64,000 bases of DNA from Histomonas meleagridis 2922-C6/04-290x (taxonomy: Eukaryota > Protista > Parabasalia): NCBI GenBank assembly GCA_020184695.1, contig JAANOX010000081.1, forward strand, positions 248,001 through 312,000, given 5' to 3'. This document shows positions 14,262 through 42,079 of the stretch, one piece after another (within the stretch, counting starts at the first letter, position 1; the number at the start of each line of letters is the position of its first letter). The translations under genes were made by a program, and so were the position numbers. The notes beneath the pieces were generated by a model that had not been told where the DNA came from, searched no databases, and saw only the letters and a list, made by a program, of their open reading frames with translations.

Positions 14262-17200
14262 ATGGCTGACCCTCGAATTAACTTTCTTTGGGTAAAACTC
14301 AAAGATGTCATGAATTACACGCAATCAGAAGTCGAAAATTGGTCACGAACTATACCAGCCGAAAAAATGAAAATGATATTAGATTTTTTTTCAGATAATG
14401 ATAAGAACGCTCTTTTTATTTTTGTTACATCCCGTTCACCATTAGAAGCTACAATTTCAGATGATCCAAAAGAATATCCTGGAAAAGATTGCATTTTTGT
14501 TCCGTACTTTTTAAAAGTTGAACAAGTTAAAACGGGAATCACGCCAAGTAACATTGAAAATGTTCTATCATGCGGTGTAATTATAGGAGATCCAGTTGAA
14601 TCTTTTCATACGATGTTTACTAATTCATATAAACATGTACTTCAACAATCCATCACACATTGTGACACGGATGTTGATCAAAAAGAACTTAACCAATTAG
14701 TATCAGTCATCGAACGTAAATCAGAAACAGTATCACAAACAATCGCAGCCACAAGGAAAGCCATTATTCTTGAGCCACCAAATCCATTAGGTGTTGGACT
14801 TGATTCCAATTTTATCTTATCAGCCGCACGAGATGATCAAATATGTACACGGTTTGCCGCGTCACTTCAACAATGGTGTTCACAAATCCAATCACTTTTA
14901 TCTGTCACAGAACAAGTTCGACAAGAAGATGAAAACAGTGGTCCACGTGCTGAAATGGATTATTGGCGTGAGCGGATGTCAATTTTTTCATCACTCATTG
15001 AATCCATCAAATCACAACCGACTCGTATCGTCATTTCAGTTTTAAAAGCCGCCAAACATCCCAGCATTACATTATGGAATGAACTTGACATCAAGATTAC
15101 CGAGTCAGCTAATGAAGCGAAAGACAATGTTAAATATCTCTCATCGTTAGAGAAATATACCGAATTATTATATGTTTTAGATCCACCAGGTATTAATGAA
15201 ATAGTACCAGGTTTAATATCAAGTGTATCAATGGTACATAGTATTTCACGATATTATAAATCATCACAACGAATTTGTACATTACTTAAAAAGGTTACAA
15301 ATCAAATGATTAATGCATGTTGTAAATATATTAATAATGGAGGATTACTTCATGAACAAGATCGTAATGAATTAATTAAGAAATTCCAAGAAAGTATCGA
15401 CTTAAATAAGAAATATCAAGAAGTATATGATGGAACAATGAAGAAGAAAGTAGTACCTGAAAATGAAGAAGGGACTGAACGAATCCTTAAAACACATTAT
15501 ATAATATTTGGGAAATTCGATACGTTTTCAGAACGTTGTTCAACATTAATACAATTATTTACTACAATTGATCAATATAATAAATTAAAAGATTGTCGAA
15601 TTGAAGGGATATCTTCAATTGTCGAAAACTTTAAACTGAATGATGATTTTACTATTCGATCGAATAATGAATCATTATTAAATCCACGGAATGAAAAGTT
15701 TAATTCTAATTATGAAAACTTTAAAGTTCAATGTTCAAATGAAGATGTAAAGTTACGGAAATGTATATCAAATGCATTTTCAGTAACGAAAACAGTACAA
15801 ATCGAACTTGAATTATATGAATCATTAAAAAAGACTATGACACGTGAAGAAGGGAAAATCGAATTAGAAATATGGTTTAAACATGCAATACAACGTTATA
15901 ATGAAGATTTAGATAATGTACGAATTTGGTTCACACAACAAAATGAAAACCCACCAATACCTAAGAACTTACCACCAATCACTGGTAAGATTGCATGGGT
16001 TCGCCAATTAATATCACGTATTAATAACCCAATGGAAATAATACGTAAATATGATTCGATCTTTCAAAATGATAAACAAAAGAAAATGGTAACTAATTTT
16101 AATAAGCTATTAACACAATTACTTACATATGAAAAGAAATGTCAAAACCAATTTAATGAAGCAGCATTATTATTAAAGAAAGAAATGCAAAACACTTTAC
16201 TTAAAGTTAATTCGAATAATAATTTAACAGTAAACTTCTCACAAGATGTAATGTCAATATTTCAAGAAGCAAATGTATTCCAACGATTAGGATTTCAATT
16301 ACCAAAAGGATTTGATACTTTATTAACACAAGAACAACATTTAAAGAATTGTCGATTAGAATTAATGAATTTATTAAATCGATATGAAAATATTATTGAA
16401 CAAATCCATGATTCATTTGAAGAATTATTTTCTAATGCTAAAACACATTTAGATAATATAATTGAACCTGGAGGTCAAACATTAACATGGAGTTCATTAA
16501 GTATTGATAAATATTTAGAAACATTAAAAGTCGAAATTAATAAAATTGAAGAAGCTATTAATAAAGTTAATGATATTCGGAAATATTCAATTAATAAATC
16601 ATTACAAGAAATTATTAATACAAGTTTAATACCAGATTTCAAAGAGCCAATTTTAGATAGTAATGATTTAATAGATAAAGTTAAAGTCGATGCAATTGAA
16701 GCAGGCAAACATATTAATGCACATGTACAATCAATACAATCAAGTGTATGTGAAATATTAACAATCATTTCTGAAATATCTGAAATCGGAATTAAAAAAG
16801 AAGATGGTAAAGATTATATATATCAATTATTAAAAGATGATAATATAATGGTAGTATGGACACGTCCAGTTTTTATGTTATTTAAGATGTATGATGGAAT
16901 GACTTATCGAGCAATATTAAAATGTTTTAAGAACTCAATATATAAATTAATTAATATGTTAACTAATAATAATAATAATTATCAAACTTTATTTTATACT
17001 GAATTAAAACCTACTTTTCCTGAATTAACTATTCAACCAAATTTAAATGACTTACAACAAACTTTAAATGAAGTAGTAAAAAGTATGTTAAATTCTACAA
17101 AAGAAATTCAAACTTGGCCTACGACAATGTTTGAAAGTACTTTATTAGAACAAAATAATACTGAAGCTAATTTAGTAGAAAAAGAACATTTAGAACAAGA

Positions 17201-20200
17201 TTTAATTGATGACGTAGATAATAATCAAGAAGAAGATGATTTAATACCTGCACAAGAACATGATATACATCCAAAGAATTATTTCACAATCATTACAAGA
17301 GATAATATAGGTATAGCTTTATTAATATCAATGACAAATAAAATGCAAATATTTGAAACTAAAATTAATGAATATATATTAAAGATATCACAATTTTCAA
17401 AGAATTGGGAAAATGAAAATGAAAATACTAAAGATTTAGATAATAAAGAATTAACAATACGAGAAATTAAAGAACAAATGGATAAATATCTTACGTTAGA
17501 AATTAATATTGAATCAATCGAAGAAAAGAATCGAATTGGACCAATATTATTAAATTGTGAATGTGTTAAACAAGCATTAATTAGTGAAGCCAAGAAATAT
17601 AAACAAAAATATGGTGATTTACTTAATAAAATAGGAAGACAAAATATGATTAAATTAAGTGATTTCATGGAAAAGATGAAAATATCATTATCAAAGAATA
17701 TTACAAGTTTAGAAGATTTACGAATAGCTATGGAATCATTACAACAAGTTCGAAGTATGGAATCTGAAATAGATATTCAAATGGAACCTATTGATGAATC
17801 TTATACATTATTAAATAAATATAATATAATTATACCACAAGAAGAATTAGAACAATATGAAGGATTAACTTATAATTGGAAGAAACTTCGAGATTTAGAA
17901 CAACAACAACAAGAAATATTACAAAAAGTATCGCCACAATTTAAAGATCAAGTAATTGAAGGAATGGATCAATTCTTAATTGACTTTAAAGCATTCATTA
18001 AAACTTATAATGAAGAAGGTCCAATGGTTCCAGGATTAAAACCTGCAGAAGCATCAGAAAGATTAAAAATATTTCAACATCAATTTGATAATTTCCAAAA
18101 GAGATGGGAAACTTATTCTGGTGGACAAAAACTTTTTGGTTTACCTTTAACTAAATTACCCGAACTTGATGAATTATCGAAACAATTTAAATATCTTAAT
18201 CAATTATATGGGCTTTATAATGAAGTTAATAGTTATACTAGAGGTATTCGAGATGTATTATGGGTTAATGTTAAATTTGAAGAAATCGAAGAAATTATGA
18301 GTGAATTCCAAAAGAAAGCTCAACATTTAACTATGAAAGATTGGGCTGCTTATCAAGATTTACAACAAAAAATCGATAATTTCGTGGAAACTATGCCTTT
18401 ATTACAACAATTATCTAATCCTGCAGTCCATGAATGTCATTGGAAACAAATCATTGAAATAACAGGTTGTGAAATAGATACAGATCCTGATGTATTTCGA
18501 CTTGGACATGTATTTAATGCAGGTTTATTAGAACATAAAGATGAAGTCGAAAGTATTTGTAGCGCTGCTATTGAAGAAGCTAAAATCTTTGCTAAACTTA
18601 AAGAAATTGAATCAGAATGGCAAACAACAGAATTTACATTTGCTAACTTTAAAGATATGAAAGATGTATTATTAAAAGGAGCTGAAACTAATGAAATAGT
18701 TACCAAAATTGAAGATTCTGTTATTATATTATCATCATTAAATTCAAATCGTTTTGTAGGTAGATTTAAAAAAGAAGTTGAATTATGGATGAAAAAACTT
18801 ACAACTTCAAGTTCTGTAATAGCAGAATGGTTACAAGTACAATCAATGTGGATATATTTAGAAGCAGTATTTAGTGGTGGTGATATTGCACGTTATATGA
18901 CACATGAAACTAAAGCATTTTCACAAATTAATAAGAATTGGTTAACTGTTATGAAGAATGCTAATGATATTAAAAATGTTATTTCTGTATGTTCAGGTGA
19001 TGAAGGATTAAATAAATTATTTTCACATTTATTAGAACAATTACAAAAATGTCAAAAAGCTTTAGCAGGTTATATCGAGAAGAAACGTTCTGCATTTCCA
19101 AGGTTTTATTTTGTATCTGATCCAGTTATCTTAGAAATATTAGGACAAGCTTCAAATCCTCAAGCAATTCAACCACATTTACAATCAATATTTGATAACT
19201 TAGTACATTTAGATTTCGATCAATTACAATTTAATAAAGTTTTAGGATTCCAATCAGCAGAAGGTGAAAAAGTACAATTTACTAATCCATTTTTAGCTCA
19301 AGGTAATGTTGAAGTATGGTTAAATGATTTAGTCCAAAGAATGAGACAAACTATTAGAGATATTTGTAGTGACATGTCACAACAAGTAATGAAATTTGAT
19401 ACTGAAAAATGGGTATATGGTAAATATCCTACACAAGTATTACTTTTATCAATGATGATCTGGTGGACTGAAAAGACAGAAGATTCATTAAATAGAACAA
19501 ATGGTAAAAATAAGAAAATATTAAATGAAACTTTACAAGAATTCGAAAGTCGATTTAAAGAACTTATTAAAATCTCAGGAAGTTTAGATAAAACTGATAA
19601 ACTTAAATCTTTACATGTCGAAGTATTAATTACATTATTTTTACATAACTTAGAAATTTATCGACAATTAATTCAATCCGGTATTACATCTTCAAGACAT
19701 TTTGATTGGCAAAAACAAATGCGTTATTATTGGCAAGTCGAAGGACGTAAATGTATAATATCTATAACAGATGTTGATCGAGAATATTCATATGAATATT
19801 TAGGTTGTACTTCACGTTTAGTAATTACACCATTAACTGATCGATGTTATATTACATTAGCTCAAGCTTTAGGATTATCTATGGGTGGTTCACCTGCAGG
19901 TCCAGCAGGTACAGGTAAGACAGAAACAGTTAAAGATATGGCTAAAGCTTTAGGTATTATGTGTGTTGTCTTTAATTGTTCTGATCAAATGAATTATCAA
20001 GCATTAGGTCGAATCTTTAGAGGTTTAGCACAATCAGGTGTATGGGGTGATTTTGATGAATTTAATCGTATAGAATTAGATGTATTATCAGTAGCAGCAC
20101 AACAAGTTTCATGTATCTTTAATGCTTGTCGAGAACGTCAACGAATGTTTAAATTTACTGATGGGAATTTAGTCGAATTAGATAATCGAGTTGGTATATT

Positions 20201-23200
20201 TATTACTATGAATCCTGGTTATGCAGGTCGTCAAGAATTACCAGAAAACTTAAAAATACAATTTAGAATGGTAGCTATGATGGTACCAGATGTTCGATTA
20301 ATCATGAAAGTTAAATTAGCTTCAAGTGGTTTTAGTAAGTATGAAGAACTTTCAGATAAATTCGCATTATTATATCAATTATGTAGTGAACAATTATCAA
20401 AACAAGTACATTATGATTGGGGCTTAAGGAATATTTTAAGTGTTTTAAGGTTTTCTAAAGAAGTTCGATCTTCAATTATAGGTAATGTTAATGAACCACA
20501 ATTATTAATGAAAGTATTACAAAATATGAACTTATCAAAACTTGTTGATGATGATGAACCTTTATTTAAAGCTCTTTTATCAGATGTATTTACTGGTATT
20601 AATATTAATCCTTCAGTCCAAGAAATTAAAGAAATCATTAAAAATAAGGCTATTGAAGATGGATTAGAACCATTTAATGAATGGTTAAATAAAGTTATAC
20701 AATTATATGAAACTTGTGAAGTTAGACATGGTATAATGATATTAGGTAATTCAGGAAGTGGTAAAACTTCTATTATTAAAACATTAGTTAAAAGTTTATG
20801 TGAATTTAATGGTCCACATAAATTAATTAAAATGAATCCAAAAGCTATTACATCATCACAAATGTTTGGTATTTTAGATCCTTCTTCTAATGATTGGACT
20901 GATGGAATCTTTTCTGCTTTATGGAGAATAGCTTGTAAGAAAACTAATGAAAATGTTTGGATAGAATTAGATGGTCCTGTAGATGCTATATGGATAGAAA
21001 ACTTAAATTCTGTTTTAGATGATAATAAAACTTTAACTTTAGCGAATGGTGATAGATTACCTATGCCTAACACTGTTAAATTATTATTTGAAGTATCTTC
21101 ATTAGATAACGCTTCTCCTGCTACTGTATCACGTGCAGGTATGATTTATGTCCCTGCTCATATATTAGGTTGGAAACCTTTAGCTCAAGCTTGGATACAA
21201 CGAATTAAGAAAAATATAATTGGACAAAAAGAAGAAATCGAAATTTTAATGAAAGAATATCCGAATTTAATTAATTCTTTAGAAAAAGTATTTAATTTTA
21301 TACCTAAGAATTTACAATTTATTATGAAAACTTCAGAAGTACAAATTATTACAACTTTATTAGATTTATTTGAATCATTAATTACTAATAAAGATGATGA
21401 TGGTTATGGTAAATTAATTATTACTAATCCTGAATTATTAAGGAAATTAATGATATTTTCTACAATTTGGTCAATTGGTGGATTTATAGATAATGAAAAT
21501 CGTATTAAATTATCGAAATTTATATGTAAAGAAAATGTTAATTTATTACCAAATGATATTAATCAAGATAAAATATTTAATTATGTTGTCGATGTCGAAA
21601 AAGGTGATTGGATTAATTGGGAAACTTGTATTAAAGATTATAATTATCCTATTAAAGGTGAAACACCTGAATTTTCTACAATATTAATACCTACAATTGA
21701 AAACACACAAATTGAATATTTATTAAAACTATTATCTAATAATAATAAATCTTGTTTATTATTTGGTGATTCAGGTACAGCTAAAACAGCTACAATTAAT
21801 TCATTTTTAAAGTCATTTAATAAAGATAAATGGACCACTAAAACATTTAATTTCTCTTCTGCTACTACACCTTATTTATTCCAAACTTCAATACAATCTA
21901 TAGTAGAAAAAACTATTGGTTCTACTTATGGACCAATTGGAGGTAAACGAATGGAAGTATTTATTGATGATATTTCTATGCCATTAATTAATGAATGGGG
22001 TGATCAAGTTACTAATGAAATCGTACGACAATTAATGGAAGAACATGGATTTTATTCATTAGAAAAACCAGGAGAATTTATTACTATCATTAAAACACAA
22101 TTTTTAGCTGCAATGTGTACACCTGGAGGAGGTAGAAATGATATTCCAAGTCGATTAAAACGACATTTTAATATCTTTTATTATACAATGCCTGATTCTA
22201 ATTCAATTGAACGAATATATTCAACAATATTAAAAGGGTATTTTACTAATGAACGAGGATTTTCAAATCAAATCATTAGTTTAATTGATAATTGTGTTAA
22301 ATCAATTTATGATGTATGGACTCAAACTAAACAAAAAATGTTACCAACACCAACTAAATTCCATTATGTATTTAATTTAAGAGATTTATCTCGTGTAACT
22401 CAAGGTATTATTCAAGCTACACCTCAAACTATTAATAATTCGGAATTATTTGTTTCTTTATTTGCACATGAATGTATGAGAGTTTTTAATGATAAATTCA
22501 TTAATAATGATGATAAAAATTGGTTTTATAATACATTAATTAAAATTGGTGTCGAAAACTTTGGTGAAAATTATGAAAATGTATTAAGTGAATCAAATAA
22601 AACTTTATTCTGTTCATTTATGTCTGATATTGATTATACACAATATGAAGATATTGATGATAATTTAATACCACGATTATATGAAAAAGTAAATACTTTT
22701 GATGCATTAAATCAACGTTGTATCGAATTTATGAAACAACATAATTCTAAACCTAATACTAAAGGTCAAAAATTAGATTTAGTCTTATTTGATGATGCTA
22801 TGAATCATTTAATACGTATTTCACGTATTATTGGATTACCTTATGGACATGCTTTATTAGTAGGTGTAGGAGGTTCAGGTAAACAATCATTAACTAAATT
22901 AGCTTCAACTATTTTAGGATATACTATATTCCAAATATCACCTGGACGAAATTATAATACAAATGATTTCTTATCTGATATTCGAGATTTATATCGTAGA
23001 ACAGGTGTACAAAATAAACCTACGACATTTATATTTACTGATAATGAAGTTAAACAAGAATCATTTTTAGAATATATTAATAATATGTTAACTACTGGTG
23101 AAATAGCTAATTTATTTACACGTGATAATTATGAAACTTTAATGAGTGATTTACGACAAATATTTTATAAAGAAAAAAGAAATGAAGTTGATACTGATGA

Positions 23201-26200
23201 AAATGTTTGGGATTTCTTTATAAAAAGAGTTAAACGGAATTTACATATAGTATTATGTTTTTCACCAGTAGGTGAACAATTTAGACAACGTAACTTAAAG
23301 TTCCCAGGATTATTTAATTGTTGTACTATCGATTGGTTTACACATTGGCCTCATCAAGGTTTAGTATCAGTAGCTTATAATTTCATATCTTCTATTAATA
23401 TAGTAACATCACAAAATAATGATATTAAAGATAATTTAAGTGAATGTTTTGCTGATATTCATGAATCAGTAAATGAAAGTTGTGAAGATTATTTCTCTAG
23501 ATTTAGAAGAAGAACTTTTGTTACTCCTAAATCTTATTTATCATTCTTAAATTCATTTAAATCTTTATATAATTCACAATTAACTAAAATACAAAATGAT
23601 GCTTCAAGAATGAAAGAAGGTTTAGAAAAGATTCGTGAAGCTAAAGATCAAGTAGCTATAATGAAAGGAGAACTTGTTGAACAAGAAAATCAATTATCAA
23701 TAGCACAACAACATGCACAACAAATGTTAGAAGGTTTAACTGTTAAAAGAAATGAAGCAGAGAATCAAAGACAAGAAGTCCAATTAATTAAAGAAGAACA
23801 ACAAAAAGAAGCCGAGAAAATTAAGAAGATTCAAGAAGAAGCTCAACATGAATTAGAATTAGCTGAACCTGCATTACAAAGAGCTACTGCAGCATTAAAT
23901 TCAATATATCCAAATGATATTACTGAAATTGCAGGTTATGCAAGTCCACCACAATTATTAAAGCGTATAATTGATGGTGTATCTATTTTAAGATATATGA
24001 AATTAGATCCTTATCAAGCAGAAATACAAAAATGTAAAACTCATGATGGAGAAGTCGAGTTTAATTCTATTGTACCTTCTTGGACAGGTTTAGGTCAAGT
24101 AATGTTAAAATCTTCAGACTTTTTAAAGTCATTAAAGACTTATAACTTAGAATTCATTAATGAAGAAATGTGTGATTTATTACAACCTTATTTAAGAATG
24201 GCTGATTTTAACCCACAAATTGCTGCTTCTTCTTCAAATGCTGCTGCAGGTCTTTGTGCTTGGGTACGTAATATGGTTGAATATCATGAAGTAGAGAAAG
24301 TAGTCCGACCTAAGAAATTAGCAGCTGCTACAGCACAAGCTAATTTAGAACGTGCTCAATTAGAATTAGCTACAATCGAAGCACAATTAGCAGAAAAAGA
24401 AAAAGCATTAGAAGAATTACAAAAAGCTTATGATGATGCTATATTACAACAACAAAAGTTTAAGATTCAAGCCGAAAATACACAAAAGAAATTACATTCA
24501 GCACAAAATTTAATTGAAGCATTATCAGGAGAAAAGACTCGATGGGAAAATGAAGCAGAAACATTAAATGATTCAATCTATAAGACTATAGGTAATGCTA
24601 TTATTGGTAGTGCCTTTAATTCATATTGTGGAATGTTTAATCATATATTTAGAAGAACTTTCTTAAATGAGAAATGGCCTAATTTATTAAGTTTACATAC
24701 AATACCATTTGATTCTACATTAAATATTATATCATTATTTACAAATGAAGCTATTTTAGATCAATGGCAATTACAAGGATTACCATCAGATGAATTATCA
24801 CGTCAAAATGGTATAGTATGTACTAATGCACCAACTTATCCATTCTTAATTGATCCTCAAGGTCAAGCACATCGTTGGATTATTCAACGACATAAAAATG
24901 ATCATTTAGTTATTACAAGTTTTGAAAATCGACATTTTAAGATACATGTTGAAAACGCTATACAAAATGGTTATCCTTTATTAATTGAAGATTGTGGTGA
25001 AGAAATTGATCCTTTACTTGATAATGTATTAGCTAAGAATTATATTAAATCTGGTAAATATACACAAGTATCTTTAGGTGGGAGAGAAGTTACTATGGAA
25101 GAAGGTTTTACTTTATATTTAACTACTAAATTACCAAATCCAAAGTTTTCACCTGAAACATTTGCTAAAACAGCAGTCATCGAATTCTCTGTGACACAAT
25201 TTGGGTTAGAAGAACAATTATTAAATTTGGTGATATTACGAGAGAAAGAAAACTTAGAAAATGAAAGACAACGACTTTTAGAACAAGTTGCAGAATTAAG
25301 AAAGACTTTAATTGATTTAGAGAATTTACTTTTAGAACAATTACGTTCTTCTGAAGGTAACTTATTAGAAAACACTACATTAATTACTACTTTAGCTTCA
25401 ACAAAACAAAAATCACAAGAAAATAAAGAAAGTTTAAACTCTGCAATGGAAACAAATCAAAAGATCACAAAATCGAGAGAAGATTATCGACCAGTTGCTA
25501 TTCGAGGAGCAGTAATATATTTCTTAATACAAGAAATGTCATTAGTTAACCCTATGTATCAAGTTTCATTAGATCAATTTTTAAATAAATTTTATGAATC
25601 GATTGAAAAAGCAGAACCTGATAACTTCCCTAAGAAACGTATTGAAAACATTATTAATACATTAACAGAAACTTGTTGGGCTTATATTATTCGAGGTTTA
25701 TATGAGAAAGATAAATTATTATTCTGTTTACAATTAGCTTTAAAGATTGAAATGTCATTACCACCTGAACAAAATCCAATTGATTTTAATGATTATCAAA
25801 CATTTATTAAAGCTGGTTCTATATTAACAGGTAATGTAACAATTGATGAACAATTACCAGAAATATTTGAACCTGTTCGTGATAATATTATTGCGTTAAG
25901 TAAATTAAATTCATTACGTGGATTTATTTCACATATATCAAGTTCACCTTTAGAATGGACAAAATTAATGACATCTCAAACACCTGAAAATGATCCATTA
26001 CCTAATTTCGGACAAACTAAACAAGAAGATGTTAAACCATTCATACGTGCAATAATAATTCGATGTTTAAGACCTGATAGAGCTATAGCAGCATCACAAA
26101 ATTATATACAACAATTCTTAGGTAAACAATATATGGAATTCCCATCAATATCTATCGATGATATAGCTGTCGAAGCAGGTAATAAGTCACCAATTATATT

Positions 26201-28151
26201 CTTATTATCACCTGGCGCTGATCCTACTCCATTAGTAGAAGAAGCTGCACGTAAAGCTAAACAAACATTAAATACAATATCTATGGGTCAAGGAAGAGAA
26301 GAATTTGCTGAGAACTTTATTAATCAATCGAAACATAAAGGCGAATGGGTTTTATTACAAAATTGTCATTTAGGATTAAAATATATGGAAACATTATTTG
26401 AGAAATATAAATCAGATCAAATTAATGAATCTAAACCAGAAAATAACACTACAAATAATAATGAAAATAAAAATAACAATAATAATAATAATAAAGAACA
26501 ACAAAATAAAGTTACTAATCCAAATTATAGATTATGGATTACAACTGAAGTACATCCAAAATTCCCAATTTCTTTATTACAATTATCTATAAAACTTACG
26601 AATGAACCACCCGCTGGTGCTAGAGCTTCAATGAAAAGAACTTTATCTTCAATAACTCAACAAATGATAGATACTATGGAAACTAGTGAATGGCATCGTC
26701 TAATTTATATCTTGTCATTCTTTAATACTACTGTACAAGAACGTCGTAAATTCGGCCCTTTAGGTTGGTGTATTCCTTATGAATTTAACGTTTCTGATTT
26801 TAGTGCATCGCTATCGTTTATGGCAAGTCAAATCACGGAGGCCGTTAAGACGTCAAAAGGTTATTTCGAAGAGTCATTTTGGCAGACGATACGATATGGA
26901 ATATGTGAAATTCATTACGGAGGACGTGTTACTGATGAATTAGATCGAAGATTAATTAGAACTATCGGAGAACATTACTTTAATAATCAAAGAGTGTTCC
27001 CAAGTAATAATGAAACAAATAGTTTCGATGGACCACCAAAACATGAATATTTGATTTATGATTGTTCACAAGTTTCACAATTTATCGAAAAGGCTAATGA
27101 AATACCACAAAATGATCCTCCTGATATCTTTGGTTTACATTCTTTGGCAGATGTTAAACTTCGTCGAGATCAAGCTAATGAGATCTTCCAAAAGATTATT
27201 GATATACAACCCAAAGAAAGCTCAATAGGTGGCCTAACACGAGAGTCTGTTGTCTTACAAAAAATCCATGATTTATTACCATTAGTTCCAGAAGATTTCG
27301 ATATGGATCATGTTCGTAGTCAAGTCGAACTACGCAAATTCAAGCCACTTGACATCTGTTGCAAGCAAGAGATCGAACGTATGCAAATAGTATTGAACAC
27401 ATTACGATCTACATTAACAGATTTAGAATTAGCTATTGATGGCTCAATCGTAATGAACGATTTATTATATAACTCTATGAACTCATTATATGATGGCCGA
27501 ATCCCACAACATTGGCGAAAGATCTCATGGTCAGCAAACAGCTTAAAAGATTGGTTCGATCAAGTCAAACTTCGCTATGACCAATATAACAAATGGATCG
27601 ACAATGGCAAAGTCGATGCGTATTGGCTTGGCGGCATGTTCAATCCTGCCGGCTTCCTCACATCGCTCCGGCAAGAAACATGTCGCGTTGAGCATTGGTC
27701 ATTAGATCAAACATTTCTCATGTCAGAAGTGCAAAGTCCAACACGAAACAATAATAATAATAATAACAATAGTAGTGACAAAGATAACAGGTTCATATTC
27801 ATTAAGGGATTATACTTAGAAGGAGCGCGTTGGGGTAAAGCACAAGGAAATAATAACCAAAGCGGCGCTTGGGGACTCACTGAGTTACTGACATCGACAG
27901 GAAGAGGTAAAACAGGGAAACTGGTCACCGACTTAAGGAACGAAATGCCGCTAATTAAGTTGTGGACAGTGAAAAGAGATAACAATAATAAGGAAATCAC
28001 ATTCAGAACGGACAGCGACACATACGTATGCCCCGTGTACTCGAGCACGCAAAGAACTGACCAGAACTACGTGTTCAGCCTCCCGCTCAAGTCATTGAAC
28101 AATAAGGCAAAGCACTGGGTGCTGCGCGGAGTGTGCATGACAACAGTTTAG
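14262..28151 (+). CDS. Axonemal dynein heavy chain, outer-arm gamma type (DNAH5/DNAH8-like), 4629 aa
   Basis: Long N-terminal tail; P-loops [24 protein letters not shown] and [40 protein letters not shown]; C-terminal HWVLRGV. Single uninterrupted ORF. Confidence 0.95.
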   Translation: [4629 protein letters not shown]

Positions 28152-35179: not shown

Positions 35180-35924
35180 TACGGGTCCTATTCTAATTTT
35201 CTTATGAATTTTATATATTTTATTCATAATTAAATAACATATGATGTATTTCATTATATATATCTTTTTTTATTCCATAACCAATTCTAAATAAAGATAT
35301 TTATATTTTCATTTTTTTGTATTAAAAATGATCGGTGCAATTAGATTTCAGTTTCTAAATCAAATAAACTATTCAAATATGTACATTTGGTAAAGTTGAA
35401 GTGATCCTTTAACGTATAATTTTAGTGAAAAAGTCAACCCTGTCTCAGAAATCAGAAAAAGATTACCTGATTGGCTACAGGTCTCATTTTTATAGATATC
35501 AAATAAATAAACATATTATATAGAAATGCTATAAAAAAACTAATTTTTTAGAAGACAGAATTTTGATATCTATTATCATTATCAAAATAATTGCAAAATA
35601 ATTTTCTGACTTCTCAATTTTAACTAGAAAGTCAATAATTCTCTTATGAAAAATTGATTATTTTTAATATGCAAAATAATATATAATGAAATATATAAAA
35701 CACCTATTATCATATGCGTAAACCAATTTTATATGAAGATATATTTATTTTTAAGTGTCAAATCTTCAAATATAAGTTTTTGTCTTATAAAGATATAAAA
35801 ATATTATCTACTGTTATTATTAATCTTTGATATATATTTTTTAAAAATTAATATAATGAAAACAACGAGATAATTATATTCTATTTGATGTCAAACGACC
35901 GTTTAGAGAATAGGACCCGTTCTT
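35180..35924. mobile_element. Candidate non-autonomous DNA transposon (MITE, Mutator-like by its 9-bp TSD), 745 bp
   Basis: Exact 14-bp inverted repeat ACGGGTCCTATTCT (35181-35194 on +, 35907-35920 on -), flanked by the 9-bp direct repeat AAATAAGGG (35171-35179 and 35925-35933). AT-rich interior without a credible ORF. Confidence 0.65.
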
Positions 35925-38274
35925 AAATAAGGGAACCTCTGTTTTTCATTAAGTATTTTAACTATTTTTCTGTAACCATTTTCGTTTGCTATGCGATATG
36001 CTTTAACAAATAAAAATTATTATTTATAAATATTGTTTTGAAATATCAGAATATTGTAATAAACAATTTATAAAACTAACAAACAGATGAATTATCAAAA
36101 TTCTCATGATCAATAAGTAATTTTACTATTTTTGAATGCCCGTTTTTAGCAGCAAATATTAGTGCTGTATTAAATATAAAAAATATTTTGTAAATATTAT
36201 ATTCCAATTTTCAAATATTGGTACAAACTTTAATTTAAATATTTAAATATCTTTGGCATTAACATTAATTCCTTTATGCGCAAGAAGAAGCTTTGCTACC
36301 TCAGTATGACCTAGTAGAGATGCATGCATAAGAGGTGTTCTAAATAATTTAAATAAATAAAAAATAATATTTACAAATTCTTAATTATTGAAATAAATAT
36401 TGTGTTAATAAAATAAATATCCTTGGTATCAATATCAATTCCTTTATGTTCAAGAAGTAATTTAACAATTTCTGGATAACATTTTTTCGATGCTATTAGA
36501 AGTGGAGAATAAAAAAAATCATATAAATTCCATGTATATTTTTGAAATATTAAACTATTATGATAAATTTTATGTAAAGAAAATAAATGGTTTTAAGATT
36601 TACATTAATTCCTTTATGATCAAGAAGTAATTTAACTATATCTGTGTCACCATGCGAAGATGCAAAATAAAGGATTGTTTCAAAAAAATAAAATGAATTC
36701 CGAATACTATTTTTGAATAGTTTGAAATTAACAAAGCAAATATTAAATGAAACGAACAAATATCTTTATAATTAACATCAATTCCTTTTTGTTGGAGAAG
36801 TAATTGAACTATTTCTGTATGACCAAATAAATATGCATAAAGAAGAGCTGTTTTAAATATTTTAAGTAATTTTGAAATATTATTTTGAAACGAAGAATTA
36901 TTATAATAAAATCCAAATGAAACGAACAAATATCTTTAGAATTAACATTAATTCCTTTTTGTTGAAGAAGTAATTTAACAGTTTCTGTCAACCCATTTCT
37001 AGATGCATACATAAGTGCTGTTGCAAATCATTTAAATGATTTCCAAATATTATTTTAAAATACAATATTATTAAAATAATCACTAAACATAATAAAAAAA
37101 TATCACATGCATTTATATCTACTCCTTTTTGTTCTAAAATATTTTTAACAAGTTCAATGTTTCCCGATTCTGATGAAAATAATAAAATATCCTTTGGAAT
37201 TGGATTGCTTTGAAGGAAATATTTAACAAGATACAAGTTTCCATGTGTTGCTGACTTATTAATTATAGAATCATCAATTTTCATTCCTTCTTTTTCCAAA
37301 AATAATAAAGTACTATAATTACCACTTTGAACACAAAAGATACCCAAACTATTAATGTTTTTTGAACCACCTGATTGAAAGGTAACCCTCGTTAATGGTT
37401 TTAATAATAATGGATTTGGAACTGATAATGTGATGAGACCTGAAATATTTTCAACCAAATTTTCTAATTTATTTTCATAAAGATAATGAAAGATGTCATT
37501 TCGATGAAATTTAATTGCTGCTTCATAGGCACCATCAAATGTTGAATGATTTTGTTCACATAAATGAATGATTTCAAGATTGCCGCCTGCAACAGCATAT
37601 TTACCTGTATTACTTACATTTGCATGATTTAATAATAAATATTTAAAACAATTAACTGATCTAAAAAATGCTGCATAATCAATTAACGAAACATCTATAC
37701 TGTTAATAAAATCACACATTTCATATGGTGATGGTTTAATCCTTTGATTAAAATCGAAATCATTTTGCGATGATATTTCTTGAAGTTTTTGGATTTCATC
37801 ATTTTGAATTATTTTCGCAATTTCAGTCGGATTATGTTTTTCTTTAATTAATTGCTCATGAATTTCAATATTATTCTTTGGAGCTTCACTACAATTTTGT
37901 TTGGAATAAAATTTTTCTTCCATCTTTTTAATATTTTCAATGAATTTTTTTATGATTTTAGAATTGTTTATTTTAATTTCTTCTTCTTTATTTTGAAGTA
38001 TCTCTAAATATTTTAAATATGTTGGTTTGATATCTGCTTTTGTGTAAAACGAAAAATAAATCAAATTGTAAATAACTAGATTAAATGTATCTGGAAAATT
38101 TGCATCAAATAAATTCATTGTTTGCTCAATGGATGTTTCAAGATTTTTTTCATTTAAATTAAATATGATTTGCTCAAGTGATGTGAGCAATTCCATATAT
38201 TTAGATTTTTGATCAGAACCACATCTTGCTTTTGAACCTATAAAATTGGTATGGTCTTGAACCTTTTCTTGCAT
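35903..38274 (-). CDS. DUF3447-type ankyrin-repeat protein (about 630 aa after removing seven non-canonical insert modules)
   Basis: SLIDYAAFFRSVNCFKYLL and YAVAGGNLEIIHLCEQ..AAIKFHRNDIFHYL are typical of the trichomonad ankyrin family. Seven further ankyrin repeats are each split by 51(54)+17 nt. 2372-479=1893 nt = 631 codons with no internal stop. Confidence 0.75.
36008..37101 (-). other. Seven insert modules [51/54-nt insert, 9-nt micro-exon, 17-nt insert] at 37025-37101, 36855-36931, 36682-36761, 36512-36588, 36342-36418, 36172-36248, 36008-36084
   Basis: Counted by hand. Module-to-module spacings are 170, 170, 173, 170, 170 and 164 nt. No GT...AG pair gives the frame-restoring lengths. 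Confidence 0.8.
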
Positions 38275-38731
38275 TCAAGCAATGGATTAAACGTATTTTA
38301 AATATTGAAAATTTTAGTAAAGCTATCAAAATCAAATTTGTATATTATTAAATCATTTGCAAATAAGTAAACACTTGCATATGCTTTTATTACCAACAAA
38401 TAAAATTTTATTCAAAAATTCTTCTCCAGTGATGTTGAACATTTGATATTATCTCAAAAGGAAGAGAAGAAAAAAATTTAATAGTTATCTTTACAAGGAG
38501 TACGAATCACTTGGAAGTCGGCAACGAATGTGTGAGATAGATCTATTAATTATTTTGGAAATAACAAATTAGAAAAATTATGCAATCAATAAAAATTTGA
38601 ACTTGATCAAATAACTGAACAATTACCTTATGAAATTAGTTTCCTCATTGGTTATTTGCATAAATATTTTTTGTATAATCAAAATAGATTTATATGAAAG
38701 AGAGAAAAATAAGAAATGTGATGTGAAATCT

Positions 38732-40261
38732 ATGTCTTCCAAACTCCGCAAAGCAAAATCTCCCAGCTTTCGATCTCATGCAAGTGGTGGGCAGCAAAGA
38801 ATAAGAAATCAAGCAGCCTCTTCACAAAATAAAAAAATTGCGCTTCAACCAATATCACCCAAAACCAATGAAATTGATGATGAAACTCAACCAATTTCTG
38901 ATTTCCCATCTCCTCCTGTTCAAATAGTTTCGTGTAGGCATGGAATGTCTGGTGTTATGGTTCAACTTCCTTCTCTTGCGTCAGCTGCAAAAGGAGAAAT
39001 TCCACAACTTGCATTTAAAAAACTCAAACAATGCTGCCACATTTGCGATTTTTCGGAAGCCGACAGAGATGTTAGTTATAAAGCCACAAAAAAAGCTACA
39101 TTAAATGAATTAATTGATTGTTATTCTAATCCAAAAACATTTTCACGCCTTACACGTGAATGCCATCAACAACTTATAGAAATGTTTTCTGTCAATGTTT
39201 TTCGTCCACCTCCAAGCATTCCACGAGAAATCTTAGTATCTGATGAAGTTACAATCGAAGACACAGCGTGGCCTCACTTACAACTTGTGTACATTCTATT
39301 TCTTAAGTTTCTTGATTGCAGTGTTGATCCACGTATCCTTCAATATCAATTATCACCTAAGTTCATTTCCAACATTTTTGCCGTTTTGGACTTCCCTGAT
39401 GAAAGAGAGAGAGGACAAGCTAAAGCAGTCATCTCGTCCATCTTTAACAAGGTGCCACCACAACGTCAGCTGCTTTTCAACGTGACCGTTAATTTACTTT
39501 TGAGCGTTCCCGACGGTTTTGAACTCAATGCCGCATCAAATCTTCTTGAGCTTTTTTATCTTTTTACGGAAGGTAGTCCACCGCCTTTAACACCTGCTAT
39601 GGTTACTGCTTTCAATAAGGTTTTGTTACCTCTTCATCTTCCTTCAAGATGTCAACGGTATTTTCCACCATTAGTTAAATGTATTTTATTAATGATTAGA
39701 AAAGATGCCAGACTTGGCAATAATTTGTTGTCGTTCTTAATATCACATTGGCCATTAACATTAGATCATAAAGCAGAATTATTTCTGGACGAGATTTTAC
39801 AAATGATTAGAGAAACAGTACCAAAGTTTATTAGCAGTAATATAAAAGGTTTGTTTACATGCGTTTCAATTGCTGCAGAGTCACCTTCAATGAACTTGGC
39901 TGGAAAAGCTCTTAATTTTTTATTGGATAACAAAATTAAAAATTTTATTGTCGAACAGCCACACTTACTTTTGGGAATAGTCTTCCCTGCTTTGTTTAGG
40001 GTAGCTCGTGGACATTGGCATCGAAATGTTCAAGTGACCGCATTAAATGTGATGAACACTCTTATGGAACTGGACCCAGAGTCCTTTAAACAAGTGGCTC
40101 TGGAGTTCAAAATGAGCTCTTTGAATGAGAAATACACAAAACAGATGAAATTGAAATTATGGAAATCTGTTGTCAAAGTTGCCTCAAAAAATGATGACTC
40201 ATTCGACCCTAAGGCTGTAAAGGCAGAGATATCCAACTTTTATACTGGAAAATTTGTTTGA
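38732..40261 (+). CDS. Protein phosphatase 2A regulatory subunit B' (B56)
   Basis: KKLKQCCHICDF, EMFSVNVFRPPP, DTAWPHLQLVY, LDFPDERER, KVLLPLH, HWP, ESPSMNLAGKAL, GHWHRNV. Likely ATG at 38732 (MSSKLRK). Confidence 0.93.
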   Translation: MSSKLRKAKSPSFRSHASGGQQRIRNQAASSQNKKIALQPISPKTNEIDDETQPISDFPSPPVQIVSCRHGMSGVMVQLPSLASAAKGEIPQLAFKKLKQCCHICDFSEADRDVSYKATKKATLNELIDCYSNPKTFSRLTRECHQQLIEMFSVNVFRPPPSIPREILVSDEVTIEDTAWPHLQLVYILFLKFLDCSVDPRILQYQLSPKFISNIFAVLDFPDERERGQAKAVISSIFNKVPPQRQLLFNVTVNLLLSVPDGFELNAASNLLELFYLFTEGSPPPLTPAMVTAFNKVLLPLHLPSRCQRYFPPLVKCILLMIRKDARLGNNLLSFLISHWPLTLDHKAELFLDEILQMIRETVPKFISSNIKGLFTCVSIAAESPSMNLAGKALNFLLDNKIKNFIVEQPHLLLGIVFPALFRVARGHWHRNVQVTALNVMNTLMELDPESFKQVALEFKMSSLNEKYTKQMKLKLWKSVVKVASKNDDSFDPKAVKAEISNFYTGKFV

Positions 40262-40643
40262 TATAAATTTGTATATAAATCTATTTTTAGCGAAATCCAT
40301 TTGTTTTTGATAAAATTTATGTTTGCGTTTGAATCCTTTAGAATATGAAACATGGAATAAATTTTATTGAAAAGAAATTAAATTTCATATTCTTTGTAAA
40401 ATAGAAATTGAAATATTAAATTCGTAAGCTTAATGAGGGCTTTTGCTTTTTTAGTGAATTATTTTTCTTTAGTAATTTTATGAACATTCCATACATACAT
40501 TAAAAATGTAAATTTTATAACAATTTGTCTTCAAAAACAAAATAATCCCAAAAGACATTTAAAGTATAATTTGCCTTTTTCTATAGTATTCATGTCCTAG
40601 AAATAAGCAGAGAGTTCATTCATTTAGAGTACGTTTAAAATTA

Positions 40644-42079
40644 ATGTTTCTTGGGAAAAATATCCCCTCCGAAGAATCTCTCCAAAACTGGAATACGGAT
40701 GATTTACATAAGCACTTACTTTTATGTTTGATAAATGATAATGCACAACAGGCTTATGAAATTTGCGCTAATTTAATTCCTCATTCGACCACATTTGAAA
40801 GTCTTCCATCTGGGTTTAGATGTTTTGGAAGACTTCCAATTCCATTTATAAACATGGCTGCTTCTTTAGGTTCATTTCAATGCGTTTCAATGTTTTTATC
40901 ACAAGGCATTGATATTAATTCAACTGATGGTGTTAGGAATGCTGTTTCTCATTGTGCCTGTTTTTCAGGCAATCAAAGTATTGTTGAAATGTTAGAAGAA
41001 AATGGTGCTGACTTTACTTTAAAAAACATGAATGAAAGTCTTCCAATCCATTGCGCATCGGAAAATAATCAAATAGAAACAATTCAATATTTAATTGAAA
41101 ACGAACTTTCAGAAATTGATGTTCAAAATTGTTTTCAGCACACACCTTTATCGATAGCCATTCAACATGATTATATTGATTTATCCAAATTTTTATTAAT
41201 AAATCATTCAGATCCAACCATATTAGATGAAGAAAGAAATACACTTCTTCATTTTATAGTATCGAATAATTCTATGGAATTACTTTCGTTTATAACTCCA
41301 ACGAAAGCAATTCCAATAAATTCGAAAAATATTAAAGGTGAAACACCACTTTTAATAGCTGCAAAGAATGGAAACATAGAAATCATCCAATTTTTATTGA
41401 ATGAAGGCGCAGATCCATTAATTACCGATTTTAAAAATCGAAACATTTTAATGTATACAATTCTTTCTGGGAACATTGAAGCTGTTTCATTTATAATTTC
41501 ATTAAATATACCGAATGTACTTAATGTGGATTCTTATGGAATTTCTTTTTAAATATATTATTCGCCTCTTCACTATGCTGCTAAAATAAGGTCAATCGAA
41601 ATAATGAAAGCTGTTGCATTATTAGATGATTCACATTTAAATGATGTGTCATCTGGTTTTACACCTCTTCATATTGCTTGTAAACATAATAACTTTGAGG
41701 CTGTTAAATTTCTTTGTTTACATCAAAGAATCGATGGTTTCATCGAAAACTGGTGTTCACAAAATGCATTTCATATTGCAGCAAGAATTCCTAATTTGGA
41801 AATGTTTGTGTTCTTGTATGAAAGATTTCATTATGATTTGTCTATTGCTGATATTAATGGGATTTATTTAATTTGTTTTGGACACCTTTACATTATGCTG
41901 TTGAAAAAGGTTCTCTTAAAATGGTTGAGTTTCTTTTGGAAAATGGAGCTGATCCTTCCCTTACTATAAACGATGATGAAACTAATGCTTGGTTGATTGG
42001 TTTAAAAAGGGAATCTCTAAGAATCGCAAAAGTATTAGAACATTTCGGAGATGAAATGTCAGTTCAATATGAAGAATGA
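40644..42079 (+). CDS. Ankyrin-repeat protein (about 466 aa after removing an 18-nt and a 17-nt insert)
   Basis: Three consecutive ankyrin ORFs in the track join into one when 41541-41558 and 41862-41878 are removed, giving DSYG-Y-SPLHYAAK and DING-W-TPLHYAVEKG. Confidence 0.78.

Follow-up and report, generated by a model that had tools for sequence, protein, structure and literature searches.

Ankyrin genes in the window

The window analysed here is a stretch of 64,000 nucleotides (nt) from the Histomonas meleagridis 2922-C6/04-290x genome (contig JAANOX010000081.1, positions 248,001 to 312,000), and all coordinates are given relative to its first letter. It carries two ankyrin-repeat genes, gene 1 on the minus strand and gene 2 on the plus strand, whose coding sequences are interrupted by inserts of 17 nt or, in one case, 18 nt. 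These inserts are present in genomic DNA and absent from RNA contigs, are bounded in gene 2 by exact 17- and 18-nt RNA junctions, and are conserved in length and position among paralogues and in one orthologue.

Gene 1 (35903..38274, minus strand) is delimited by the Pfam matches of its longest open reading frame (ORF), an open spliced model and RNA contig coverage. The ORF opened by the ATG at 38274 runs over 36988-38274 and encodes 428 amino acids (aa) comprising DUF3447 and the first ankyrin repeats. Pfam reports PF11929 (DUF3447) at 9e-8 together with Ank_2, Ank_4 and Ank, and the host protein therefore has the layout of the trichomonad DUF3447-ankyrin family, a DUF3447 domain with ankyrin repeats after it. 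Seven ankyrin pieces lie on the same strand at 37021-36932, 36851-36762, 36678-36589, 36508-36419, 36338-36249, 36168-36085 and 36004-35903. They measure 90 nt each (84 nt in the sixth), read T/S-P/A-L...KD and share 62-80% nucleotide identity with one another. The gaps that separate them are, in order, 80, 80, 83, 80, 80, 80 and 80 nt long. A first-pass annotation made from the sequence had described seven minus-strand repeats split at the same codon by six gaps of 80 nt and one of 83 nt, and the measured coordinates agree with this.

Tandem Repeats Finder assigns the gene 1 array a period of 170 nt, and the reading frame rotates at every gap. A length of 80 nt is not a multiple of 3, and stops are present in the upstream frame of gaps 4-7. 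Taking 68 nt out of each gap yields a single open frame of 631 aa with only a terminal stop. Both the in-frame stops of modules 4-7 and the 631-codon ORF described earlier are thereby confirmed. In length, the 2372 nt of genomic sequence become 1896 nt (631 aa plus stop) once 28 segments of 17 nt, hereafter 17-mers, are removed.

Gene 2 (40644..42079, plus strand) is a second ankyrin gene, supported by its ORFs, Pfam ankyrin families, an open spliced model and an RNA contig covering 40688-41930. It encodes 466 aa after two inserts are removed. The first, ATTTCTTTTTAAATATAT, is 18 nt long (41541..41558) and lies between GGA (Gly) and TAT TCG CCT (Y-S-P, in the context Y-S-P-L-H). The second, ATTTATTTAATTTGTTT, is 17 nt long (41862..41878) and lies between GGG (Gly) and TGG ACA CCT (W-T-P, in the context W-T-P-L-H).

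Anatomy of the gaps

Each gap of gene 1 consists of four units of a 17-nt insert followed by one kept codon, which amounts to 80 nt; the 83-nt gap holds one extra codon. The inserts follow the consensus 5'-RTTT-N9-ATTT-3' and all are in phase 0. RTTT starts peak at gap offsets 0, 20, 40 and 60; when the counts from 13 gaps are pooled modulo 20, offset 0 collects 28 of them and offset 13 collects 25. The position-specific counts are 46/53 for R1, 43-46/53 for T2-T4, 39/53 for A14 and 40-44/53 for T15-T17. Slots 18-20 and 38-40, where the first two kept codons would lie, are poor in T (24/78, vs 322/585 in the other 45 positions, p = 6e-5), richer in G+C and codon-like. Insert length is nearly invariant, with 29 of the 30 inserts in the window at 17 nt and one at 18 nt, a distribution as narrow as that of the 15-17-nt intron classes discussed below. 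The inserts had been thought to have diverged strongly, a view that the figures do not sustain: their pairwise identity is 0.67, vs 0.69 for the exons and 0.43 by chance.

The seven gaps can be written out in this way, all on the minus strand. Module 1 (80 nt, 37022..37101) has 17-mers at 37101-37085, 37081-37065, 37061-37045 and 37041-37025 and keeps AGT TGT GGA GCA (SCGA). Module 2 (80 nt, 36852..36931) has them at 36931-36915, 36911-36895, 36891-36875 and 36871-36855 and keeps GGA TTC CAA AAA (GFQK). The 83-nt gap of module 3 (36679..36761) has 17-mers at 36761-36745, 36741-36725, 36718-36702 and 36698-36682, between and after which AAT, CAA ACT, GGA and GAA are kept (NQTGE). Its 3 additional nt are best read as a further codon, in the CAA ACT pair, with all four inserts staying at 17 nt. 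In module 4 (80 nt, 36509..36588) the 17-mers at 36588-36572, 36568-36552, 36548-36532 and 36528-36512 all start with ATTT and the kept codons are AAA AAT GGA TAT (KNGY). The same uniform ATTT start is found in module 5 (80 nt, 36339..36418), with 17-mers at 36418-36402, 36398-36382, 36378-36362 and 36358-36342 and the codons AAT AGA TTT AGA (NRFR). Module 6 (80 nt, 36169..36248) has 17-mers at 36248-36232, 36228-36212, 36208-36192 and 36188-36172 and the codons AAA AAA ACA AAT (KKTN), and module 7 (80 nt, 36005..36084) has them at 36084-36068, 36064-36048, 36044-36028 and 36024-36008, with ATT GAT ATA GTT kept (IDIV).

These seven loops replace the IFG-A-type loops proposed earlier, and the junction peptides that had been suggested for mass spectrometry (e.g. 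DIFQK) would not exist under the 17+3 anatomy, which predicts loop peptides that include ...NLKTKNGYSPLLIASK and KNGYSPLLIASK. When loop residues are scored by log-odds, the 17+3 parse comes out ahead, but the reference set of 16 uninterrupted homologue loops is too small for this to carry weight.

Two other schemes were tried and rejected. A single GT-AG or AT-AC intron per gap has no consistent placement. A deletion between direct repeats (ATTT...ATTT) would remove 13 or 73 nt, which gives the wrong frame and is contradicted by the unambiguous 17- and 18-nt RNA junctions. The whole window was also scanned for 17- or 18-nt segments starting with RTT whose removal fuses long ORFs; only the insert at 41541 was convincing, and no case outside ankyrin genes was found.

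Transcript and genomic evidence

RNA data are taken from the assembled contigs of four runs (X1-X4) of one study. For gene 2, a 1403-nt contig from X1 leaves out exactly 18 nt at 41541 and is otherwise identical to the genome over 1243 nt. A contig from X4 omits exactly 17 nt at 41862 and is otherwise identical over 355 nt, at a depth of 12.7 of 40.2. Neither junction can be slid and neither has microhomology, which makes template switching by reverse transcriptase unlikely. A technical origin of the pattern more generally, whether through skipping by reverse transcriptase, RNA contigs wrongly assembled across paralogues or a faulty genome assembly, would draw on the fact that the family is large and highly expressed and that many chimeric joints occur among the RNA contigs. 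Given the long identical flanks of the two omission contigs, their lack of microhomology, and a frame logic and a conservation across independently assembled paralogue and orthologue DNA that stand without any RNA data, an artefact is very improbable.

For gene 1, the most informative contigs fall in modules 6 and 7. A 403-nt contig from X1, with the same form in X4, aligns to 36381-36248, continues with 2 letters and resumes at 36211-36085, for a net loss of 34 nt. This matches, base for base, the removal of 17-mers #1 and #2 of module 6 with #3 and #4 kept and the codons AAA AAA retained. In addition, an X2 contig begins exactly at 36191, which fits removal of #3. In module 7, a joint at 36028/36085 skips 56 nt and has 5 non-matching letters between its sides. 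The net loss is 51 nt, and all four runs show this joint, at depths of 52-65. It again matches the 17+3 anatomy base for base, with #1 to #3 removed and ATT GAT kept, base 36028 absorbing the last T of GAT. Module 4 shows an RNA joint at 36511/36588 in all four runs (depth 44-67), which fits the loss of all four 17-mers, the letters in between not being reported. At module 1, contigs of all four runs cease to align at 37101, where the gap begins. Paralogue transcripts that align as chimeras hold 11-13 letters between exons, and one of these, reverse-complemented, reads VNAKD-YFGR, i.e. four loop codons.

These contigs also bear on the internal parse given by the first-pass annotation, in which each gap is a 51-nt insert (54 nt once), a 9-nt IFG-like micro-exon, a 17-nt insert and one codon. 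That arrangement is arithmetically in frame, gives an ORF of equal length and places Gly at the same position in four modules. It is almost certainly wrong, as the module 6 contig loses just 34 nt and keeps two codons, AAA AAA, an outcome that a 51-nt unit cannot produce, and the 5 letters of the module 7 contig mismatch the genome where a 9-nt micro-exon would match it. Within the supposed 51-mer, RTTT recurs every 20 nt and slots 18-20 and 38-40 are codon-like, and the 'IF' of the micro-exon is the ATATTT end of the third 17-mer, which recurs in every paralogue. A search of RNA for deletions of 51 and 17 nt had been proposed as a check; 17 nt (41862) and 18 nt (41541) are indeed lost in gene 2, whereas no 51-nt unit appears and the net losses of 34 and 51 nt in gene 1 come with codons kept.

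Genomic data were used to place the loss. Sampled 31-mers of 36005-37101 are present at fractions of 0.93 and 0.75 in two DNA samples and of 0.21-0.30 in the four RNA runs, and about 0.35 of the words in this interval would be expected in RNA were every insert gone. The 17-mers are thus present in DNA and removed from the transcript, as introns of the spliceosomal type are. Removal at the RNA level is well supported, and the earlier claim that the inserts are precisely removed stands, with RNA contigs that lack them and DNA runs that contain them. Translational bypassing, which had been offered as one route, or programmed frameshifting would leave the gap in mature mRNA and is excluded by RNA without the 17-mers. 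Splice sites created by editing, another route put forward, find no support, since no edited letters are listed in the RNA contigs.

Removal from DNA in part of the population, as in ciliate-like elimination, or transcription from insert-free gene copies would also produce RNA without inserts. In favour of this, the elements are short and rich in AT, their excision is precise, and the RNA runs contain forms with and without the inserts side by side. This explanation is nevertheless highly improbable. Unlike ciliate-type internal eliminated sequences, the inserts persist in the DNA runs at the word fractions given above, which would accommodate a minor insert-free DNA fraction, and the verified junctions have no flanking TA or pointer repeats. 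Partly processed forms, in which neighbouring 17-mers are in and out, are typical of RNA processing. Nuclear dualism is not known from parabasalids. A ciliate-like genetic code or germline was rejected separately, as long uninterrupted standard-code ORFs in the window, including one of 4629 aa, argue against it.

Related genes

A protein search with the 428-aa ORF of gene 1 found paralogues at 34-52% identity on metagenome contigs. Named homologues in Histomonas meleagridis and Tritrichomonas foetus were recovered as well. Almost all of the ORFs found stop right after '...KDI', at their own first insert. No transcript-derived full-length product of gene 1 was found in this protein search, which returned only paralogous genomic ORFs stopping at the first insert. 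Three independent metagenome contigs that carry paralogues share the 90 + 80 nt architecture. Parsed by the 17+3 anatomy, paralogue loops read HDGS, IAGK, HFGN, HEGR, YDGK and RAGY, with Gly at the canonical ankyrin position in all of them.

An orthologue of gene 2, at 55% aa identity, lies on a 10.8-kb multi-gene Logan contig and has three inserts (L006:1220-1236, 1438-1454 and 1557-1573). All three are 17 nt long, as are all 24 inserts on the paralogue contigs. Two of them occupy the sites used in gene 2 of the window, where they differ in sequence, start with GT where the window has AT, and measure 17 nt even at the one site where the window has 18; the codons that follow (TAT and TGG) are conserved. 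Unit length and position are therefore conserved while sequence drifts. The third follows W-C-G, at a place where gene 2 of the window is uninterrupted, so single inserts are gained or lost between related organisms. Without its inserts, the orthologue yields an ORF colinear with the window's gene 2 protein.

Named H. meleagridis proteins of the family carry odd hydrophobic tails (e.g. ...GLFIIYIF) that resemble read-through into the first 17-mer. Public annotation probably truncates the ankyrin family systematically at the first insert. In T. foetus, the annotated protein of the TRFO_30524 region (L008:3686-4440) stops at the first T-rich gap, and six more ankyrin pieces follow in shifting frames. 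The gaps there are 66, 46, 31, 47, 43 and 62 nt long, the first with GT starts every 22 nt. These T. foetus gaps (31-66 nt) would not parse into 17-mers, and judging from their sequence a related system with different unit lengths may operate in that species.

Interpretation

The gaps are best explained, with good though not complete confidence, as strings of four ultra-short phase-0 introns of 17 nt (rarely 18), of the form RTTT-N9-ATTT, that are excised from RNA while the single codons between them are kept. In this scheme the four normal ankyrin loop codons (x-x-G-x ahead of T/S-P/A-L) would be encoded one at a time between 17-mers, the 17-mers carried in genomic DNA would be cut out of the transcript individually, and the joined product would be a 631-aa protein of the ordinary DUF3447-ankyrin kind. 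Tandem duplication probably built up the arrays at two levels, that of the 20-nt unit formed by a 17-mer and its codon and that of the 170-nt unit formed by a repeat and its gap.

Several observations weigh against reading the gaps as introns. The RNA evidence rests on contigs of one study rather than on single reads or long molecules, and the RNA nature of the runs is only tentatively typed ('RNA?'). The runs do behave as RNA, because contigs start and stop at gene boundaries (e.g. 38728-40295, at the neighbouring B56-type gene) and intergenic depth is near zero. Modules 1, 2, 3 and 5 have no listed RNA junction at their own locus, and in none of the listed gene 1 contigs can the loss of a module's four 17-mers be read letter by letter. 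Retained forms exist in both genes: in gene 2 the 18-nt insert is kept in an X3 contig and the 17-nt insert in the X1 contig, and in the gene 1 contigs shown, #4 of modules 6 and 7 and, in X1/X4, #3 of module 6 are kept. Retention of these three gene 1 17-mers would end translation early. The inserts are also poor in the marks of ordinary introns, with GT starts in 4/30, AG ends in 0/30 and a branch motif in none. Finally, no known machinery has been shown to remove a 17-nt AU...UU segment between 3-nt exons.

The three retained 17-mers of gene 1 (36188-36172, 36024-36008 and 36208-36192) begin with AAAT, AATA and ATTG, and none has an RTTT start. This shared deviation hints that the 5' tetranucleotide matters for the efficiency of removal. 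Their retention reflects either slow removal at weak sites or decay at the 3' end of this copy of gene 1. In its stronger form, the second option takes gene 1 to be a decaying pseudogene whose inserts are not productively removed and whose open exons are a recent inheritance from tandem duplication. That the 17-mers retained in the main RNA contigs lie towards the 3' end, that they lack RTTT, and that the loops GFQK, NRFR, KKTN and IDIV have no canonical Gly would all suit such a copy. Yet the exons are 62-80% identical and still all seven keep an open ankyrin frame and the 90-nt length (84 nt in the sixth), the gene is transcribed with most 17-mers removed, and the last two repeats are open despite lying downstream of retained inserts. 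A pseudogene is accordingly judged improbable.

Comparison with known introns

The 30 inserts of the window (28 in gene 1 and 2 in gene 2) were compared with described intron classes by their ends and motifs. At the 5' end, 20/30 begin with AT, 4/30 with GT and 4/30 with AA; at the 3' end, 19/30 end in TT, 1/30 in AC and none in AG. The trichomonad extended 5' motif GYAYGY/GTWYWD is matched by 0/30 inserts, and CTAA occurs in 0/30, so that neither CTAAC nor ACTAAC is found in them. The inserts are thus not GT-AG introns, as had been claimed before, and the trichomonad branch motif is in none. Trichomonad introns are never shorter than 23 nt and have GT/AG ends, the 5' motif GYAYGY/GTWYWD and an ACTAA branch site that is fused with the 3' splice site (PMC12316389, PMC13548475). 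Type A and B introns of T. vaginalis share the Parabasalia lineage with the 17-mers, and type B introns, at 23-25 nt, are likewise short and consist mostly of poly-T between their motifs (PMC12316389); their GT/AG ends, extended 5' motif, fused ACTAA and length of at least 23 nt are, in contrast, all absent from the 17-mers. U12-type (AT-AC) introns, for which the branch site is TCCTTAAC, do not fit either, as the inserts begin with ATTT, not ATATCC, and 1/30 ends in AC.

The closest likeness in size is with the spliceosomal introns of Stentor coeruleus (15-16 nt) and Mikrocytos mackini (16-17 nt) (PMC9505925, PMC10245619). Like the 17-mers, these form a very narrow length class at the intron minimum, are AU-rich, have a potential branch A in the 3' half and are incompletely spliced in RNA (PMC9505925, PMC10245619). 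They differ in that Stentor introns are mostly GU...AG, which the 17-mers are not, and Mikrocytos introns have highly conserved sequences in common. Neither kind occurs in tandem with 3-nt exons, and each is found across many gene families, whereas the 17-mers all lie in ankyrin loops. Micro-exons of a few nucleotides can be spliced in animals and plants, where they are flanked by long canonical introns. A counterpart to four 3-nt exons separated by 17-nt introns was not found in the searchable literature.

Given removal at the RNA level, there is an even or slightly better chance that the machinery is the spliceosome acting at minimal intron length on unusual A/G-U...U-U ends. In its favour, the inserts have R at +1 and U at +2, orthologues can have GT in place of AT at the 5' end, and the 15-17-nt Stentor and Mikrocytos classes are spliceosomal (PMC9505925, PMC10245619). 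The A-rich positions 9-11 are also 7-9 nt away from the 3' end, a distance close to that between branch point and 3' end in the trichomonad motif RCTAACACAYAG (PMC12316389). What speaks against a spliceosome is the UU at the 3' end, the exon size of 3 nt and the confinement to a single protein family.

On the same premise, the main rival of the spliceosome is a separate endonuclease and ligase route, which is possible but distinctly less probable; some further mechanism is less likely again. As an explanation of the whole locus, a dedicated route would have an endonuclease that recognises U tracts or measures length cut before RUUU and after AUUU, and an RNA ligase of the RtcB or tRNA-ligase type rejoin the ends. 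The inserts' lack of AG ends and of a branch motif, their few GT starts, their strict 17-nt length, exclusive phase 0, 3-nt exons and confinement to ankyrin loops in the window all suit this proposal, as does the contrast with the GT...ACTAAC...AG extended motifs and length of at least 23 nt of trichomonad spliceosomal introns (PMC12316389, PMC13548475). Against it, R at +1, U at +2, the A-rich centre and the 15-17-nt size resemble the minimal introns of Stentor and Mikrocytos (PMC9505925, PMC10245619). Moreover, an enzyme system of this sort is not known to act on mRNA at unstructured sites. The dedicated route is therefore considered rather unlikely as an account of the locus. A machinery distinct from the spliceosome, defined by length-measuring, U-tract-guided excision and ligation at unstructured sites, with 3-nt exons tolerated and an expanded gene family as its substrate, is put forward only tentatively.

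The folding results also count against a dedicated endonuclease and ligase. Nine folds gave z-scores from -1.39 to +0.68 vs shuffles, and since the gaps fold no better than shuffled sequence, recognition through a bulge-helix-bulge, an IRE1-type hairpin or paired ends is unsupported. Inverted repeats at the ends of the supposed 51-mers likewise find no support in the folds. An Rfam scan of the window gave no match. XBP1 and tRNA introns are described as non-spliceosomal (PMC5435141). HAC1/XBP1 splicing (IRE1 plus ligase) and tRNA-type splicing resemble the present case in that small introns without GT-AG are cut by an endonuclease and joined by a ligase; they need defined stem-loops or a bulge-helix-bulge and number one intron per substrate, whereas the 17-mers have no predicted structure and occur by the dozen per gene family. 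The nonconventional introns of euglenids are nuclear pre-mRNA introns without GT-AG whose ends are drawn together by base pairing and whose length is variable. The 17-mers are likewise nuclear and non-GT-AG but differ in their fixed length and in gaps with no structure beyond that of shuffles.

The H. meleagridis genome paper describes introns as scarce, with at most one per gene. No description of introns like the 17-mers was found in the searchable literature on Histomonas, parabasalids, Dientamoeba or tiny introns. Published intron pipelines for T. vaginalis drop junctions without canonical motifs (PMC12316389), and elements of this kind would therefore be systematically missed.

Implications and neighbouring genes

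Should the 17-mers be spliceosomal, they would defy three supposed rules at once, on the ends of introns (GT-AG or AT-AC), on the need for a recognisable branch site and on how small a workable exon can be, and they would provide a natural setting in which to study the minimal substrate of the spliceosome. Otherwise they would represent a new route of mRNA maturation and a new class of nuclear mRNA intron. The arrays also resemble a clean example of introns multiplying through short tandem duplications. For annotation, the consequence is that the models of a large family of ankyrin genes, in Histomonas as well as its relatives, probably stop short at the first insert, and the named H. meleagridis and T. 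foetus homologues appear to end in T-rich read-through. H. meleagridis is a poultry pathogen for which no treatment or prophylaxis is available (PMC8529796), and a parasite-specific RNA-processing step would have applied interest.

The window has a G+C content of 29%, in keeping with the published H. meleagridis genome. Its remainder is intron-poor and uses the standard genetic code; at 14262-28151 on the plus strand it contains a single uninterrupted ORF of 4629 aa. Between the two ankyrin genes lies a B56-type gene with a 543-aa ORF (38630-40261, plus strand), for which RNA contigs begin at 38728-38815 and end at 40291-40295. Because of these contig ends, the real start of this ORF is probably an internal ATG near 38732 (M-S-S-K-L-R-K), with very short untranslated regions.

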